Positions 15,087 through 25,710 of a stretch of DNA of 58,102 nucleotides are shown here, piece by piece. Numbering within the stretch: position 1 is the first letter of the stretch; each line of letters starts with the position of its first letter. Below the pieces are notes generated by a model. It was not told the DNA's origin. It made no database searches and saw nothing but the letters and a program-made list of their open reading frames with translations. The stretch spans positions 1 through 58,102 of the forward strand of contig CALSCP010000281.1 in assembly GCA_943704425.1 (NCBI GenBank). The letters are read 5' to 3'. The DNA comes from Ministeria vibrans ATCC 50519 (Eukaryota > Protista > Filasterea). Position numbers and translations under genes: made by a program.

Positions 15087-18000
15087 ATGGCCCCATGGCG
15101 CCTTGTAGCGATAGTTCTTGTTGCTTTTATGGTGCACGGCTCTGACTGTCGAACGAAAGGAAGCGAAGCGCTCGGCACAGTGACGAATCAATGGGAACAG
15201 GTAATGTCTTCTTACACGCACCCACGAGACGGTTCCCCCTCCTTCTCTGACTGTGCACTGCTCACACCGTGCATGTGCTCTTGGTTTGCTGCAAGAGCAG
15301 TCCTCCTTTTGCTTCATTGGGGGGTTTTATCGTGTCGCTGAATTATTTTCGCTTTCGCTCGTGTCTTGCCTCTCCCGGCATTTGTGACTCCCCCGTACTT
15401 CCTACACACTCCTCGTGTCTTTACAAGAGGCGATGCGGTGTATCGTGTCACGCACGCACACACACACACATTAATAAATACATACTAATCACTCACACCT
15501 TACCTGACTCATTCACACTTCCCCAGGACTTCACTACTGCCTTTGGACCTGATTTCGCCTGGATGCCTGCTCCCATTACGGCCCCCCGATGCATCTTTGG
15601 ACAGCTCATGTACAATGGCGAGTTGCCGTGCGTCTGCTTTGACATGTTCAATCCCAATGATACCCTCTCCTACTTCTATCCGACTGTCTGGCTCTACAAC
15701 ATCCTTTTCAAGTCCTGGACCAAAAACCCCAACGAAGGCGCTCCCATGTTGCCCTTCGATCCAAACCTTGCGGCTGCCGGTCACGACCAGTGGGCGTCAC
15801 CCACCATGTCGCTCGTGACGGTCCTCGACAACCTTGGCAACGAGACACTTCTCCTCCTCAACTCGGCGGCCCTGGTGTGTTCGCCCGAGTGTCGCTTCTC
15901 GCTCGTCCTGATGCGCTGGGACACGAGCAAGTCGTGGGTGATTCTTGACACGTCGTTGGGCCCAGCTCCCATTGCGCCCATTTACAATCCCGTCGTGGTC
16001 GCCTGGCAAGACAAGATTCTGCTGCACAATGTCAACACCACGCTCACCCGCGACAACGCTACCTACATTTACTCGTACCTTAACAACGACTGGCTCATCG
16101 CCGACAGCGGCCCACAACCGGCCGTGAGCAACGAAGAGTGTGTGTGCAGCGATCAGACCAGGACCGTCTGTCCCTCGTTTGGACCGTACGGCACCATCAA
16201 CTCCATCAACGGTACTGTCTTCCTCTCCTACTGCACCGGCGACTGTTGCGACACCCTCAACCTGTGGACTTTCCCCATGGACGCGCCCGTCAGCTCAAAC
16301 CTGAGCGTGTGGAGTCCTATGGAGACCAACATGACGCAGGACGCAGTCAATTGCTTCCACGACGGCGAGGTGCAGTCGCTGTCGCGTGGCATTGTGTGGA
16401 CCGACGGACAGCTCATGTTCATCTCGTCGGGCAGCAAAGGCTGGCTCATGTGTTCGTTTGACGTCATCACGCACATTTGGACACGCCAGACAGACCAGCT
16501 TGTACGTGGCGCCCCTAGCATTGGCCACTTCTCCGAACTCATCCCCAGCGCCATCGACTCCTTTGTGCTCCCTATCTACTCGGAGACAGCGCCGCTCTCG
16601 GGCCACGCCGTCGAGTCAGGCCAGACCCTGCAGACAATTTCACAGTACTACACCATGGGACCATTTGCTTATTGGTGGCTTCAGCGCACCGCCGACGAGT
16701 CTCCATCGGGTCGCTTTGGCTTTGCACAGTCCACCACCACCGACATGGCCCAGTACTACATTTTTGGCGGTCGCGACTACACTCCCTCTGTGTCTGATGC
16801 TCTATGGAGACTTGACGTAAAAAATAATGAGCGAGAGAGGAGGGACAGGCAGAGAGATAGAGAGCGAGAGTGACAAAGTGACAGGCAGAGGAGAGATAGC
16901 TTGAGTGAGTGTGTATCTTTGTGGTGTGTACCTTTGTGTATCTTTGTGGTGTGTATATTTGTGTATATTTGTGTTTTAGTGGTGCGTGTTGCCAAAGAGA
17001 CAGAGGCGAACTGATGTTGTGCTGTAATTAGATGGGCACTTCGACGTGGACTCGCATTGTGAGTCGGAATTACCCGCCGACTGCGCGAGAATTGGCGTCG
17101 CTGGTGCTGCTGTTGGATGACTCGATGATTGTGCTCTTTGGTGGGATTTCAGGCGTGCTCAATCAGGAGATCACATCGGTCATGTACAACGACACGAATT
17201 TGTTTGACTTTAACACACTCAACTGGTACAATGCGCTCGAGAGCGACGCCTACTCGCCCGAGTGCCTCAATGTGTGCTGGGGCACAACCATGTCACAGAC
17301 GTCCACATCGACTGCCATGCTTATCACCATTGTGGGGCTTTTTTCGCTCTCAACCGTCACCGAGGTGCCTCACCGTCTCGAGTGGACCCGTCGCGACCAC
17401 GGCGACTTTCCACCGCGCATGCTCCACGCCGCCATGGTCGCCGACTTTGATGCGCTCTATGTGTTTGGCGGCATCACCAATCATAGCATCATGATCAAGG
17501 AGCAGTACGAGCTCACACAGGGCACCAACGACCTGTGGCTCTTCAACGTGTCCACGGGTGTCTGGAGTGAGATATTCTACGACCCCGCTTCGGTGGTGCC
17601 GTCGCCGCGCTACGGACACCAGTGCGTTGTGCTTGGCACCGAAGCGGGAACGCGGCTTGCATGTTACGGCGGTCTCAACGGCGACATGTACACGGCTGTG
17701 CCTCGCGACCCCCACGTATACCTGTTCTCGACCATGTTGCGACGCTGGGAGGTCGCCACGTCAATTAACAACCCACCGCCCAACACCTACTTTGGCATGA
17801 CGGTGCACCGCGACGACAACAGCATGACCATTTTCACGTTTGGCGGAACGCTCTTTCAGGTTCAGTGGATTGCTATGGGCGTCACTCGTACCATTACACT
17901 TGGTTGCAATCCGGGCAGTTATTCGCCCGACTACTTTACAACGGTTCGAGCGATTTCTTGTTTGTTGTCTGCGTATTTTCTTTTTTTCCTCTTAATCTTT

Positions 18001-20230
18001 TTCTTTTTTTACTTCCTCTGCCACAGCTGTGCTATTCGTGCCCTGTGGGATGGTATGCTGAAAAGTTTGCCCAGAAGCAGTGCGTAAAGTGTCCCCGTGA
18101 CCAGACAACTGCGCACGAAGGGGCCAGCAGCAAGTCTGAGTGCACTGTGTGTCCGTCCAACAATCAGCTGTCGGCGTACTGCAACCGGAACGGCTACTGT
18201 CTACAGATGAAAGAGCTGGCGACGCCCACCTGCACCTGTCGTTTTGGTTACAGTAGCTTTGACAATTGCAACGTAACACAACACGCGATAAGAATAGCAA
18301 CAGTTAGATTTCGTTTGACTCTCTGTGTTTTTGTAGGTTCCATGGATTGCGGTGATTGTGTGCACGTTTGTTGCAATTTTGAGTGTGATATTTGGTTTTT
18401 TGTTTGTGCGCTGGCGCAACAGTCGGCGCGAGCGACACTATGTGCGTCTTTTGGACCACGCAGAAGACTCCGTGCTGCGTCTGTCGCGCGTGTGGTCGAT
18501 TCGCGAGAGTGAGCTTATGCTGCACTATCACATTGCCGAGGGAGGCTTTGGTGAAGTGTGGTTTGGCGAGTATCATGGCCATGCGGTGGCGGTGAAGCGG
18601 TTGCGCAACGACGTGACGCTCAGGGGGCTCATGGACTTTGAGCGGGAAATTGAGCTCATGTGCACTCTGCGGCACGAGCACATTGTGTTTTTCTATGGTG
18701 CCGGAATTGACCATCTCGAAGTAACCCACACCTAAGTAGTGTAGTGTAAAGCATCGTTTTAACATGTCACTGCTCATCCCCTCATAGGAACCTTTTCTGG
18801 TGATGGAGTACATGGGCCTGGGCTCCATGGCGAATCTGCTACACGAAACCACCGACGAACTGTCCATGAACGAGCGTGTCAAGTGGATCACCGATGCCGC
18901 CCGTGGCATGCGTTTCCTTCACGCCCAGAGCCCCCCTTTTGTTCACAGAGGTATATATAAAAAAACAGTACAAAAAAACATAAATTTGTGTAAATGTTTT
19001 TCTTTTCTTAATTGTTGAATAGATTTGAAAACAGCCAATCTGTTGATTTCGGCAAGACGAGTGTGTAAAATCAGGTTTGGCATTCCACCAATTAACACAA
19101 CAATAATAATAATAACAATAATAATATTATTATAATAATATTATTATTATAATTATTAGTATTACTATTATTATTATGATTATTAGTATTACTATTATTA
19201 TTATGATTATTATTATTTTTATTATTATTATTATTATTATTATGATTATTATTATTATTATTATTATGATTATTATTACCATTATTGTTATTATTATTAC
19301 TGTTGTTGTTTTATCGGGTTGTGCAGTATTTGGAACATTGAAAATATATTTGTTAGTGACTTTGGAACGACTCGCATTGTGGGCAAATCATTGCCTCTAC
19401 TGCGGACGGGAACGGGAAGACCGTACTCGACGACTGCGAGCTACAGTGCGCGGAGTATGGTGTCGGACGGGGCGAACGGGAGCGACGATGGGCGGGAGCA
19501 GACGACGGGGGGCGATGCGCAGTCGACGGAGCGACTGTCGGGGACGGCGGCGGCCATTAAGCACTGGCGCAATGTGCCGGGTGTGGCGAACACGCGCATG
19601 TCGAGCCATGGGTACAAGTCGACAAATGCAGATGGGGTCATGGGCACGCTGGCGTACTGTGCGCCTGAGTGTCTTCTCTCGGCCGCCGGCGAGTATAGCG
19701 AGGTGGACGGCACGTCGAGCGATGTCTACTCGTTCGCCATCATCATGAATGAAGTTATGGAGCGTCGGTATCCCTTTGAAAACACGGGTCTGGTGGGCGG
19801 CGATCTTGCCGCCCACGTGCTCAACGGCAACCGCCCGCTTGTCACGGACGACGCTTATCCTGTGCTGCCTGCCTCGTCTCTGTACGGCCGCAAGTCGTAC
19901 CGTGCTACCATGGAGATGTGCTGGTCTATGCTGTCGTTGGCGCGCTACAACTTTGACACTCTTGTGAGCATTCTTGTGGGCGTGTACAACGACGTGGGTG
20001 GCGAGACGGTTACTAACGAGGAGAATATCAAGCGACAGACGCACGCCGCGTCGGGCCTGGCCACCAACCAGACGACCAACCACACCTACCTCCAGCTCAC
20101 CTCGGGCAGTCTCAGTGCCACGAACCTCTCGCGCACCGGCACGAGTGGCTTTCCTCGCAGTGCAAATCACCTGCAGACGGGCGGTGACGACGATGATGAT
20201 GATGACGATGACGACTACGATGACTACTAG
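15087..20230 (+). CDS. Receptor-like TKL Ser/Thr kinase: signal peptide, Kelch propellers, GCC2/GCC3-type Cys-rich repeats, EGF, TM, kinase
   Basis: Signal peptide MAPWRLVAIVLVAFMVHG; Kelch YIFGG/VLFGG/YVFGG/CYGG; CPVGWY..CVKCP; TM helix WIAVIVCTFVAILSVIFGFLFV; kinase EGGFG, VAVK, HRD/LKTAN (split by an intron), DFG and GTLAYCAPE. Confidence 0.88.
19100..19300. repeat. Imperfect (AAT)/(ATT)n microsatellite in a kinase intron
   Basis: Directly visible. Confidence 0.95.
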
Positions 20231-20356: not shown

Positions 20357-21435
20357 TTAAATGAATCTGTGCTCACAAGGATCGTACGACTCGCGTCGAC
20401 ACGCCGACTCTGTCTCATGGTATATCAATTCAAACCCTCGAAACTTTTGGCCCACCACCATTTGACCAAATCGGTGAGGACCGTCTGGGGAGAAAAAAAA
20501 AACAAAGAGCAAGGGGGAGTGGGGGTGGGGGTTAGTGACAGAGGTGTGTCAAGTCACTGTGTTTGAATGTCATTCAGTCACAAGCGTGCGCGTTCTCATC
20601 AAGTTCTCATAAAGCTGGTCACGTACACAGAGCGCGTGCATGTTGTCTGCGCTATGTAGCGTCTCTCTCTCTGTCTCTCCATTTGTTTCTTTGTCTTTCC
20701 CCCCCTCTATCACTTTTTTTTTCTTCTATGCTTAAACATGACTCGGTGTACCTTGAGGGTGAGTAAAAAGCTCGATTTGCAGGTCAATCATGTCTTTGAA
20801 GAGCGCCTCGTGAAGAGCTGTTTGCGACACCGAGTAGTCCTGCAACGCCGGATTCTTATTCACTTCAATCAACTGAACCTAACACATAATGAGAATGTGT
20901 GTGAGTACGTCATGATCAGTGAGCACTTTTGCAAGTGTTTGAGTGTTTGAGTGTTTGAGTGTGTGTGTGTTTGAGTGTGTGTGTGTGTGTGTGTGCGTGT
21001 GTGTATTGGCGTGGGAATGTGAGTGTGTGAGTAGATAATGATGCGTTTTTTGAGTATTTGTGGTGTGAGTGAAATATATACAAGGATGTAATAAGTGATA
21101 ATTCGCACCTGTAAATCATCGGTGAGCATAATATCGAGTCCTAGCAATTGGAAAGTGCCGGAGCGACGCGCAAAGTTCGCTCGGTTCGACTCAAAGATCA
21201 GTCTGCAGATTTTAGTCATTTCCTTCTGCCTCAGTGTAAAAAAACGGAAAACCAAAACCAAAAAAAAACAGGTCAAACAACGCAGAGGGAACTGGGTGAA
21301 AAAAAGACAGAAACTGACAAGAAAGCGCGTTCTGAAGTGTGCTGCGCGGGGGTGGCCGCTCTCGACGAGGTAGTCTTCCAGCTGGTTCACTGTCCACAGC
21401 AGTTCCTAGTATGAGACACAGTCGTAGAATACATA

Positions 21436-21474
<39 letters not shown>

Positions 21475-23547
21475 GTTATTTTGATTATGTTTTGTCATAC
21501 GTCGGTGGACACATTCTTTCCCTGCTCTTGACGACGTTGGATTTGCAGGACTGTGTTAATAATGTGAGAGGCAAGGTCGTTTGACGATGCATTGTACGGC
21601 ACAAGGGAGCGACGCACATAGCCCGAGTGCATGAAAACCATGTAAGGGCGCGTGTTGGCAACTAAGCATTGAATAAGCATGTTCAGAAAACGCATTCAAT
21701 ACCAATGGTTATAAGTATTACTGCACGAGGGGCACTTGATGATACAAGCTACTCTCTCTCTCTATCACTTTGTTCTTTGTTTCTTTCTCTCTCTCCCCCT
21801 TCTCTAGTCTTTGTCTCCTTGGTGCTGTCACACACAACATAAATACACGTATATAGTATATATCCATATACACACACATCTGACACACACATACACACAC
21901 ACACAAATCATAACAATATAATTATGTTACTATCATAATGATAACGGCGTACTGAGCATATAATGGCGGATGTCAAATTTGCAAGCGTGAATGAGAAGCG
22001 GGTTGGAGATGTAGCTCTGAATAACGGCCGACACAGGTGGCACACACGTGCGGTGCTGCTGTGCAAACGCATCCAGATCCGCAGAGTGCATCATTTTGAT
22101 TCCTTTGCCTCCCCCGTGACTATAATCATCAAACAAAGGGTTCCAAAAGAAACTCAGCTAGTGTACAGATTTCGGGTCTTTTTTGGTACCGTCCTGGTTT
22201 GAGCATCCACATTTGGCGTCGACGATCGTCAAAACGCGAGAAAAACTGAATGCACTCTTCGCGGTTGTGCAGATCGTATGTCAGTGGCATCAGCCCAACC
22301 TCTCTCATTGCTACAAGGTTAAAAAAAAAAACGTCAATCGCTTCTTCAATTATCGTTTCTTATTTGTTTGTAGTTGTCATTGTGCGCTTCTTACAACAAC
22401 CGTATTCTCTGAGAAAATTTGCCTTGTCGCGGTATTGCTCGTTTTTAAGGCCACCTTGGACAAAGCTTGAATAAGCCACATGTGCATGAAACACACACAC
22501 ACATGCAGGCACCCACATATATAAGACAACCAAAAAGGCTCCTAATTTTTTTACAAATTGCCCCTGTCTTACCTAAACTCCAGGAACCGAGAACGTACGA
22601 GTGCAGAAGAGACGCCCGCTTCTGGTCTGGCGGCAGGTTGTGCTCGAGTGCTCCTTCGGACCAGCGTCCCCACATCACCTGATATGTTTCGCCCCTGTCC
22701 ATCTGTTGGAGAGGGAGAGCTAAGTTTAAGCGCATGCATATGCAATGCAATCCAATGGCAACATTGGCTGTCGTACTCGTGCTTTGCAGCGCTGCAAGCT
22801 GTTCGAGGCAATCCATCCGCGGCGGTGAAACTCCCTGCACCAACAGCATACAACATTCATGAGACCAAGCAGCACCGCATATGCACGCAACACTCCATGT
22901 TTATGTGCTCTTCGATTCATACCGTTTTGTCAAAGGGTAAATGGTGTGAACATGACAAATGTGAGGATGTCCGTTGAAGATGTCTTCCGTTAGCTGTGCG
23001 AATCATTAATATTAGCCGTGACTGGCAATGCAGCGCATGACTTCCACGCATGCAATGCAGTACCTGTGGTTCAACCGGGCGGCTCTCAAAGCACTTGCGA
23101 AGGAACTCGCGTGAGATGTGGCCGTGAGCGTGTGGAAGCCGTCCCGCAGGCGCTGAGCCCGAGTGCGCCCGTCGCTGCCCTCGGTCATGCGTCGCCCGTT
23201 TTACATGGTGCACCAGCGCTTTGGAAAGGCCCTTGCGGATTTCTTTCATGGCCGCCTTTTGCAAGTCAATTAATTGTTGTCAAAATACTATCGGACGTCA
23301 ATCTGTGTCAAAAAGGTATTTACGTGTTTTGCTGCGTTTGGCACAGTGTTCGCGCTTGCGGTTTCTTCTACGTCCCATTGGCCATCGTACGTCCACTATG
23401 GAGGCGTATGATGAGGTGAGAAGTCGACAGGACGACCGCGTAAGGGGAGAGTTTTCATACCACATCAGGCCTGAGCAGCGTCATGGAGAGTCCCACAACA
23501 AGTGCAAGGGCAATGAGAGCGACAAATACAGATGTTGGAGGCCTCAT
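20357..23547 (-). CDS. Tubulin-tyrosine-ligase-like ATP-grasp ligase (TTLL10-like core) with an N-terminal signal anchor or signal peptide; about 13 exons
   Basis: The spliced product has WMLKPGRHGGGKGI, VIQSYISNPLLI..KFDIRHYML, ANTRPYMVFMHSGYVR, FQLLGLDIM and LIEVNKNP. Exon 1 encodes MRPPTSVFVALIALALVVGLSMTLL. Confidence 0.85.
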
Positions 23548-23862
23548 TGACTTCAAAAGAAATGATTAATGAATGAAATTGAAATTTGAAATTCAAGATA
23601 ATCAAAATCGAGATCTGTACACAACATCAAAACCGTAAGAGATGTTGTTGCACAAATTTTTGAGATTGGAAGCAGTACTCCGTACATCCTCATCTCTCCC
23701 TCGTATGGGTACGGTTACAGACTATTGGAATGATATAATCGATTAGTTCTGTAGTCTGTCGTACGGCTTCTTGACTCTTTGTCGGTAGGTAGTACATGGG
23801 ATTGTATTAACGAAAGAATTATTTTCATACGAATCAATTAATAATAATAATAATAATAATAA

Positions 23863-25710
23863 TTATTCGGTCCGAGTCATTTTGAGCAACGACTGCGACT
23901 CCATTCGTTTGTGCGCGGCTATGTCACTTAAGGCCTGATTGAAATCACGCATAGCCATGGGGCGCAACTGCGACGGCTTGTTCGACTCAGTGGTCGCATT
24001 ACTTGATGCAGAGGCGCGCACAAGATCACGGACACAGGCGTGAGCGGCAAAGCGGCACATTTCGCGGAGGTCTGAGCCGGAGAGACCCTGAGTGCGCTGC
24101 GCGAGGTCAGCCACATCAACGTCCGCACCAACGTGCTCGGTCTGCAAAATGACGCGCAGAATGGACGCGCGCTGCTGCTCGTCAGGGAGTGTAATGTGAA
24201 AGCGTTTGGGCATGCGACGCAGAATGGCACTGTCAAGGTCGGCAGGACGGTTGGTGGCCCCAAGCACAATTACGCCCTGTGACGAACTCGACGAGCTCAG
24301 TCCGTCCCACAGCGTCATAAACAATGCCTATAAAAGAGATAGATATAATTATAAGGGCAAAAGAACGTGATAGAGGGAAAAAGAACAAAGTAATAGGAGC
24401 GGACAACATGATAATGTGATAGGAAAAAGAACAAAGGAATAGGAAGAGGACAACATGATAAAGGAGACGAATGAAAAGAAAACGGGCGAGGGATAAATAT
24501 ATTATGTTAAATACTTTGATTTGTGAGGATGCTTCGTGGTCGGTGGAAGAGCGCTCGCGTAAAAACGAATCTACACATAGGGTGGTTTACGAGTGAGTGA
24601 TAAAAAAAAAGGGTAACAATGAATACTCATGATAATAATATTAAAATAATTATGATTATTATTAAATTATTATTATTGATTATACCGATTTCGTCGATGA
24701 AGATGATGCAGGGCGCAACCTTGCGTGCCAAGGTGAAAACGGCCTGCGTAAACTTTTGACTCTCACCAAACCACTTGTCGTGGATTGAGCTCACTTGAAG
24801 GTTGATGAACGCGCAGTTGCATGCCTGTGTGAGCGTGAGTGAGAGAGAGAGAGTAAGTGAGACGTGAGTGAGAAAGTGTATGTCTTTGTGATATATAATT
24901 ATATAATATTATAATATAATTATGTGTCAGTCGGTGCATGGCGTACCTTGGCAACTGCCTTGGCCAGCATCGTCTTGCCACAGCCAGGAGGTCCGTAGAG
25001 AAGAACACCTGCGAGAGGAAGAAGGTAAAAAGGCCTGTCGGTTAGCATGGGAGGAGACGGCGCTGTCGCTCTGGTACCAGAGGGCGGTTGCAAGAGGGTG
25101 GAGCCGGTACGGAACAAGTCGGGTCGGGTGTACGGCAGCACAACGGACTCCTGCAGGTCCTCGACGATGCTGTCAAGGCCGCCAATGCTGTCCCAGGACA
25201 CTGTGATGTCGCGTGGATCAATGATGTCTTGCGAAATGACACATTCGTGATCTGAGAGCTGTACAAAACGAATCGCACAAAGATAGGAAAAAAAAAAAAA
25301 AAAAAAAAAAAAAAACGTGAGTGTCGAGCTGTTTGCAGAGAGAAGGGCCGCACAGGGAGGGACGGCAGTACCTGGACGTTCTTGTTCAGACGCTCCAGAA
25401 TCCGTTTACTTGCGTTACGAGCGGACGCCTTCTTCTGTACGCGCGGGAGAGAGGGAGGGAGAGAGAGAGGGCGAGTGAGTCAGTGAGTGCGTGGTCGAAA
25501 AGTCGAAATCGACTCGTGTTCTCGTGTTGGCTTACATTTCCTCCATCCATGGCGCCCAGTAAGTACCTCACAGAGTAAAACAGAACCACCTGAAGGGAAG
25601 AGGAGCAGCGATAAGCGTCGCGGTAGAGCGCAAGAGCGAAAGTCGATGCGCAAAACCTGTGATGCGGCGAACAGGCCAAGCTCCAGTAGTAACTTTGCCT
25701 TTCTCTCCAT
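23863..25710 (-). CDS. ATAD1: ATAD1/Msp1 AAA+ ATPase
   Basis: N-terminal anchor, [41 protein letters not shown] and [18 protein letters not shown]; canonical introns. Confidence 0.93.

Follow-up and report, generated by a model that had tools for sequence, protein, structure and literature searches.

Can an enzyme of the TTL family work outside the cytosol? To our knowledge, all characterised TTL and TTL-like (TTLL) enzymes are cytosolic, and they act mostly on tubulin. The question is raised by a gene of Ministeria vibrans ATCC 50519 in which a TTL domain follows a hydrophobic N-terminal helix. This gene occupies positions 20357-23547 of the minus strand of contig CALSCP010000281.1. The window, meaning the whole stretch of 58,102 nucleotides (nt) that was analysed, supplies the coordinates used here unless another contig or locus is named. 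A sequence-only reading of this DNA had pictured the product as a TTLL10-like ATP-grasp ligase with a signal anchor. From the sequence comparisons described below, we lean towards an anchored TTL ligase of the secretory pathway or cell surface. The observations that we count for a lumenal site are a type II layout and charge polarity found in all five anchored TTL genes, helix hydrophobicity of the grade expected for the endoplasmic reticulum (ER), four cysteines conserved in the clade, the lack of a microtubule-binding extension after the core, and the position of one paralog beside CHGN/GT7 and GT47 genes.

The window is eukaryotic and intron-rich, with a GC content of ~47% near the TTL gene and with microsatellites inside introns. 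The gene model runs from an ATG at 23547-23545 to a TAA at 20359-20357, exactly the ends that the sequence-only reading had assigned, and its 14 exons reproduce the order of tail and hydrophobic helix, stem and TTL core described there. All 13 introns are of the GT-AG type, preserve the reading frame and measure 65-291 nt. Donors begin with GTA in 11 cases, and the exon 1 donor is identical to two further donors in the gene. Exons 1-5 lie at 23547-23461, 23395-23324, 23255-23064, 22993-22923 and 22834-22777, exons 6-10 at 22702-22573, 22454-22395, 22310-22190, 22119-21953 and 21661-21501, and exons 11-14 at 21405-21319, 21225-21109, 20878-20752 and 20484-20357, all on the minus strand. The main features are as follows.

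20357..23547, minus strand: whole TTL gene, 14 exons, 1578 nt, 525 codons plus stop.
23461..23547, minus strand: exon 1, MRPPTSVFVALIALALVVGLSMTLLRPDV, with Met, the basic tail MRPPTS, the hydrophobic helix and RPDV; donor GTATGA, phase 0.
23473..23529, minus strand: predicted signal anchor or signal-peptide core, residues 7-25 (VFVALIALALVVGLSMTLL), Kyte-Doolittle mean 2.75.
22923..23395, minus strand: exons 2-4, a stem of ~110 residues; exon 4 opens the TTL N-domain.
22395..22834, minus strand: exons 5-7, TTL N-domain (RRGW, YQVMWG) and first conserved Cys (GC, end of exon 7), assigned from paralog matches.
22190..22310, minus strand: exon 8, with the MPLTY strand, a conserved Cys (REEC) and WMLKPG, whose ATP-binding Lys (22198-22200) aligns with TTL K150.
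21953..22119, minus strand: exon 9, with the GKGI loop, VIQSYI and KFDIR (21966-21980); Pfam TTL E=3.3e-9.
21501..21661, minus strand: exon 10, TRPYMVFMHSGYVRRS...HIIN, a TTLL10-like signature with sequons NAS and NVS; 47% identity over 38 residues to P0002, a Pleurobrachia bachei protein.
21109..21225, minus strand: exon 12, GTFQLLGLDIM, with the Mg-binding Asp (GLD at 21133-21141); TTL D318/M320 by alignment.
20752..20878, minus strand: exon 13, LIEVNKNP, with the catalytic Glu and Asn (20858-20866); TTL E331/N333 by alignment.
20357..20484, minus strand: exon 14, C-terminal motif F-E-L-I-Y...C...DPC, conserved in the clade, then the stop.

The helix of exon 1 is exceptional for this DNA. 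Its best 19-residue Kyte-Doolittle mean is 2.75, and a value of at least 2.7 is reached by just 11 of the 808 ATG-started, stop-free 29-mers of the window (~1.4%). The N-terminal flank carries a charge of +1, and the C-terminal flank a net charge of -4 over 15 residues (the last four of exon 1 and the first 11 of exon 2), which by the positive-inside rule predicts that the N-terminus faces the cytosol and the C-terminus the opposite side. The basic N-tail, the one 19-residue helix, the stem and the C-terminal catalytic domain are together the layout of a type II signal-anchored enzyme. Alternatively, the helix is possibly a cleavable signal peptide cut after GLS, where small residues (G19, S21) are available. 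Whether signal anchor or cleaved signal peptide, the helix would place the ligase domain outside the cytosol.

Similar helices precede other TTL domains in the same genome. A genome-wide six-frame profile search for TTL (29.7 Mb, 2860 contigs) returned 11 matching loci on 10 contigs, including the window gene itself (C281:21948-22109). Genes on contigs C733, C2371 and C244 form a clade of four members with the window gene; all share a C-terminal motif, [FW]-x-L-[IV]-Y...C...C, which ends in [DN]-P-C in three of the four. Each of these three paralogs also starts with Met, a tail of 5-10 residues containing Lys or Arg, and a hydrophobic helix with a Kyte-Doolittle value of 2.26 (C733), 1.83 (C2371) or 2.11 (C244); the tail of C2371 reads MMGFRRPS when counted from its ATG. 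The first exon of C244 carries the helix together with the beginning of the TTL N-domain, and a single 67-nt GT-AG intron joins it, in frame, to a 439-codon main frame; the anchor exon of C733 joins its body through an in-frame 84-nt GT-AG intron. C2371 and C733 are interrupted by assembly gaps, seen as runs of N (L024 ~6200-7370 and L020 ~2200-2380) beside (GA)n and (ATT)n microsatellites, so the middle exons of both are partly missing from the assembly.

A fifth gene, on contig C1813 (~1160-2900, minus strand), belongs to a different subfamily, matching TTLL6 (1.5e-16) and TTLL7 (3.8e-13). Its anchor consists of MNLLRGR followed by LAVAAAIVTVCLGISVWLG, with flanks of +2 and -4, and lies with positions 7-181 of the TTL profile (E=8e-24) in one open, intron-free frame of 361 codons; here the link between helix and core is independent of any splice model. 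The second exon carries FGLD and IEMN. As a control, the TTLL gene on C1653 has an open frame of 802 residues and lacks such a helix. The M. vibrans genome is thus predicted to hold at least five anchored TTL genes from two subfamilies, and in each of them the charge before the helix is more positive than the charge after it. Recurrence of the same anchor type and charge polarity in four further TTL genes makes a functional anchor in the window protein more plausible. The search for other signal-bearing homologs that the sequence-only reading had in mind was successful within this genome, where it found these four, while outside it our blunt searches found none.

The genes next to two of the paralogs were also inspected. 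The C733 paralog is directly downstream, on the same + strand, of genes for Golgi glycosyltransferases (L025:1-2410), namely a chondroitin N-acetylgalactosaminyltransferase-like gene (CHGN plus Glyco_transf_7C) and exostosin GT47 exons. The divergent, head-to-head neighbour of the C1813 gene (L033:3024-4785, + strand) encodes a type II-like helix, AFRLCLGAVLCIVMLRLIYV, and has no Pfam glycosyltransferase match; the label of type II glycosyltransferase for this neighbour was left unconfirmed for that reason.

These paralogs bear on an objection to the window gene, namely that its helix is an artefact of the gene model. Exon 1 would then stand outside the main mRNA, and an ordinary soluble cytosolic TTLL would be translated from a downstream Met, for which exons 3, 6 and 8 offer in-frame codons. 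The stem exons 2-4 lend this some credit, having no Pfam match and no detectable homology, and their sequence is not kept in the paralogs. We consider the artefact improbable, since the same N-terminal helix begins four other TTL genes, sharing one open frame with the core in C1813 and one exon with the start of the N-domain in C244, and since so few comparable ATG-started frames of the window are as hydrophobic. A stop codon in the same frame precedes the ATG by 18 nt, and the AAA ATPase gene on the upstream side, on the same strand, ends ~316 nt before the TTL gene begins, leaving little space for an alternative first exon; the exon 1 donor, moreover, resembles the other donors of the gene. 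The junctions of exon 1 with 2, of 2 with 3 and of 3 with 4 are all in phase 0, so the frame from anchor to core survives the skipping or mis-calling of any one stem exon.

The domain behind the stem is apparently a divergent, catalytically competent TTL-family ATP-grasp ligase. The window gene was searched and aligned exon by exon, and all match scores are accordingly per exon. The Pfam TTL family (PF03133) matches exon 9 with E=3.3e-9 (36.8 bits against a cut-off of 20.1 bits), and weak but collinear matches link exons 10, 12 and 13 to consecutive segments of the same profile. Residues were numbered as in chicken TTL by aligning paralog C244 to 5gon_F and the window exons to C244. Among the residues that we take, from TTL structure papers, to be ATP ligands, the equivalents of K150 (WMLKPG), Q183/Y185 (VIQSYI), K198/D200/R202 (KFDIR), R222 (GYVRR), H239/N242 (HIIN), D318/M320 (GLDIM) and E331/N333 (IEVN) are kept. 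The only change among the ATP and Mg ligands checked is at T241, whose equivalent is Ile. Every motif quoted in the sequence-only reading was found, with WMLKP in exon 8, GKGI and KFDIR in exon 9, PYMVFMHSGYVRRS, NAS and NVS in exon 10, GLD in exon 12 and IEVN in exon 13.

It is very improbable, given this retention, that the anchored domain has entered the secretory pathway but no longer ligates, persisting as a pseudoenzyme or carboxylate-binding module. The divergence that might suggest such a fate is considerable. TTL chains in the PDB match single window exons with E of 0.07 or worse, and exon 10 matches no PDB chain at E<=10; in addition to the replaced T241, C2371 and C733 have E-A-N where the window gene has E-V-N. 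However, the Glu and Asn of this motif are kept in all paralogs, as are the remaining checked ATP and Mg ligands in the window gene. The C244 frame gives far clearer matches to solved structures (TTL 2.6e-11, TTLL3 3.4e-10). An AlphaFold2 model of this frame, built with a shallow alignment, reached a predicted local distance difference test score of 48.7 and was too poor to use.

No domain other than TTL is evident in the protein, since Pfam scans of the exons give TTL alone and the chain stops ~60 residues past EVN. In particular, the core is followed by no C-terminal cationic microtubule-binding extension. Solved TTL, TTLL3, TTLL6, TTLL7 and TTLL11 share the fold family and, by position, the ATP and Mg ligands, but they are soluble cytosolic proteins with tubulin- or microtubule-binding elements, and the window exons match them marginally.

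What, then, is the nearest relative of this ligase? A full HMMER scan with exon 9 only (55 amino acids, aa) against 1.84 billion representative proteins gave seven matches. The top one, P0001 (1e-9), was rejected as a repeat artefact, and the best of the others is P0002, a EukProt protein from Pleurobrachia bachei (E=6e-7), for which the closest named Atlas cluster is 'polyglycylase TTLL10-like', an annotation to be taken as a lead only. P0005 (E=3.2e-5) ranks fifth, after two proteins with multiple TTL modules. These two, P0003 (1515 aa) and P0004 (1264 aa), have the unusual architecture of three or four complete TTL modules in tandem, embedded in sequence rich in Lys and Asn; the N-terminal part of P0004 is acetyltransferase-like.

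P0002 is collinear with exons 9-13, at 41, 47, 24, 39 and 39% identity respectively, and for exon 10 its identity of 47% compares with 40% for P0005. Exon 10 contains a signature, TRPY.VF.H.GY.R...PY...S.D...H..N, that both proteins share. When P0002 was searched back against the genome, the anchored clade scored best (C244 1.2e-19, C2371 4.8e-12), giving a reciprocal best relation at the level of exons. The resemblance to TTLL10 that had been noticed from the sequence is therefore real in a nearest-neighbour sense. The nearest outside relatives appear to be animal TTLL10-like proteins, a relation that, at 24-47% identity per exon, is one of nearest neighbours and not demonstrated orthology. 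In a back-search with P0005, a TTLL3-like fragment on C2065 scores about equally. C2065 and the near-identical C2615, contigs of ~500 base pairs, contain a TTLL3-like exon that matches P0006 at 38%, and may be allelic or collapsed copies of a monoglycylase-type gene.

TTLL10 itself is cytosolic or axonemal and elongates glycine chains on tubulin that has been monoglycylated by TTLL3/8 (10.1101/2024.03.31.587457). The clade departs from this type in several respects. P0002 and P0005 have no N-terminal hydrophobic helix, the N-terminus of the former being basic and non-hydrophobic and that of the latter hydrophilic, whereas a soluble TTLL10-type protein free of any secretion signal is not what the window gene is predicted to encode, with its helix of 2.75 and type II polarity. 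The clade also has four members, extra conserved Cys residues and a C-terminal motif of its own, FELIY...C...DPC.

Several points weigh against a secretory ligase. The predicted type II orientation of the window protein draws on the positive-inside rule and nothing else, and the predicted use of exon 1 and of exons 2-4 on splice logic and analogy with the paralogs. Exon 3, rich in His, carries a net charge of +9, and in cytosolic TTLLs such strongly basic stretches serve tubulin-tail or microtubule binding. N-glycosylation sequons number two, against 2.06 expected after shuffling; the Asn of the conserved PYN is present in cytosolic TTL as well, which is at best neutral and makes a recurring N-x-S/T at that place weak evidence. 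Of the conserved cysteines, the one in exon 8 is present in P0005 too, and the first C-terminal one may have a counterpart in P0002, so that an argument from disulfides is weak. In the fragmented assembly no better TTLL10 candidate was seen, and with the closest relatives being tubulin glycylases, the clade could be the organism's own TTLL10. Finally, blunt searches found no ortholog of this architecture outside the genome.

The limits of those searches are considerable. Queries with the C244 open frame, with its core (200-439) or with an alignment of C244 and window/paralog exons found no outside match, the word prefilter apparently failing on so divergent a clade, and scans of metagenome and viral contigs, which need identical 8-mers, found no relative. 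Single-exon queries reach only relatives above ~40-45% identity in the 1.8-billion-protein library. The lack of matches is consequently no evidence that the clade is lineage-specific.

As to glycosylation sites and cysteines, the sequence-only reading had listed scattered Cys and the NAS and NVS sequons among the features of the core. Both are present, but they carry less weight than was implied. With their number at chance level, sequon enrichment was dropped as support for a lumenal location, and the Cys content, 10 in 519 residues, is ordinary. Across the four clade members, four Cys positions are conserved, one where exon 7 ends (GC), one in exon 8 (E-[ED]-C) and two in exon 14 (C...[DN]PC); conservation is partly clade-specific in that the GC and DPC cysteines are absent from P0002 and P0005.

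Much of this evidence would suit a protein that is tethered to a membrane yet faces the cytosol, at the cilium or plasma membrane, the ER or another organelle, and modifies tubulin or nearby acidic cytosolic proteins. The window gene would then be the organism's TTLL10-type polyglycylase and the C1813 gene a tethered glutamylase, in keeping with their nearest relatives, TTLL10-like tubulin glycylases for the one and TTLL6/7 glutamylases for the other. The lack of a better TTLL10 candidate in the assembly, the basic stem and the chance number of sequons agree with such a topology, and the TTLL3-like fragments on C2065 and C2615 could prime polyglycylation. We regard this as a competitor, though an unlikely one, for three reasons. 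With tails of just 5-10 residues and an N flank that is the more positive in all five genes, the helices are predicted to leave the C-terminus outside the cytosol. Their hydrophobicity, 2.1-2.75 in four of the five (C2371 being at 1.83), is of the ER type. Furthermore, the clade-specific partner cysteines of exon 7 and of DPC have no equivalent in P0002 or P0005.

If the protein is instead the anchored secretory ligase that we favour, it would be an enzyme of ~525 residues built like a Golgi type II enzyme, with a 6-residue basic tail, a 19-residue helix, a ~100-residue non-conserved stem and the catalytic domain. With the helix as its signal anchor, or possibly a cleaved signal peptide, the ligase domain would lie in the lumen of the ER or Golgi or outside the cell. 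There, lumenal ATP would activate a substrate carboxylate as an acyl-phosphate, to which an amino acid would then be joined. The acceptor carboxylate may belong to the side chain of a Glu or to a C-terminus, and conceivably to a uronic acid; the added residue may be, as a first guess by analogy with TTLL10, glycine. The enzyme would act on macromolecules of the secretory pathway or the cell surface and not on tubulin.

Two known systems offer partial parallels. Golgi type II enzymes have the same predicted layout of a short basic cytosolic tail, a single N-terminal helix, a non-conserved stem and a C-terminal catalytic domain, but the catalytic domain here is that of an ATP-grasp ligase and not of a glycosyltransferase or sulfotransferase. 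The other is CPED1 (C7orf58), a predicted secreted TTL-like ATP-grasp protein whose proposed role is the ligation of amino acids to polymers at the surface (PMC2824669). The sequence-only reading had invoked CPED1 as a precedent for a secreted ATP-grasp domain, and the literature bears this out in the form of a computational prediction (PMC2824669); beyond it, our literature search for secreted or lumenal TTL/TTLL enzymes found nothing. In both cases a TTL-like ATP-grasp domain is predicted, computationally, to follow a secretion signal. CPED1 differs in being animal-specific, in having a cleaved signal peptide, and in its cadherin-like and PC-esterase domains, which the window protein lacks. 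Since the window gene lacks these domains and is closer to the TTLL10 type, matching Pfam TTL directly, it is by sequence comparison not a member of the CPED1 family.

A wider proposal, which we put forward tentatively and hold to be possible rather than probable, is that M. vibrans has a 'tubulin-code-like' system of amino-acid ligation in its secretory pathway. At least five anchored TTLs, drawn from two subfamilies, would attach branches or chains of amino acids either to proteins that are secreted or exposed at the surface or to the carboxylates of glycosaminoglycan-like glycans. Four TTLL10-like enzymes of glycylase type and one TTLL6/7-like enzyme of glutamylase type could then mirror the split between initiators and elongators that is seen on tubulin.

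Some further observations concern the surroundings of these genes. Upstream of the TTL gene, a 46-codon ATG-started frame (23553-23693, minus strand) ends 6 nt before the TTL ATG in another frame and is a possible upstream open reading frame in the 5′ leader. The AAA+ ATPase gene (AAA plus AAA_lid_3; 23863-24324, minus strand, and upstream) lies at a very compact intergenic spacing. On the other side, a converging gene (15269-20230, + strand) encodes a large receptor-type kinase with, in order, Kelch/attractin-like beta-propeller repeats, a Cys-rich module, a transmembrane stretch, a Tyr/Ser-Thr kinase domain and an Asp-rich tail; its stop codon is 127 nt from that of the TTL gene. Elsewhere in the genome, introns interrupt the histone H3 and H2A genes on C1671 (L027); in many lineages this would be unusual for histones of the replication-dependent kind.

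The five genes provide testable material, above all C1813, where one open frame spans both anchor and core, and C244, with its single 67-nt intron. Should the anchors face the cytosol instead, these would be the first membrane-tethered TTLLs and relevant to how cilia are modified. If a TTL ligase were active in the lumen of the Golgi or at the cell surface, it would define a class of extracellular modification that is new, whether of proteins after translation or of glycans, for instance the glycylation or glutamylation of matrix components. ATP-dependent modification of proteins in the secretory pathway would then no longer be confined to kinases. The anchored genes of M. vibrans would also give the 2010 prediction for CPED1 (PMC2824669) independent company.

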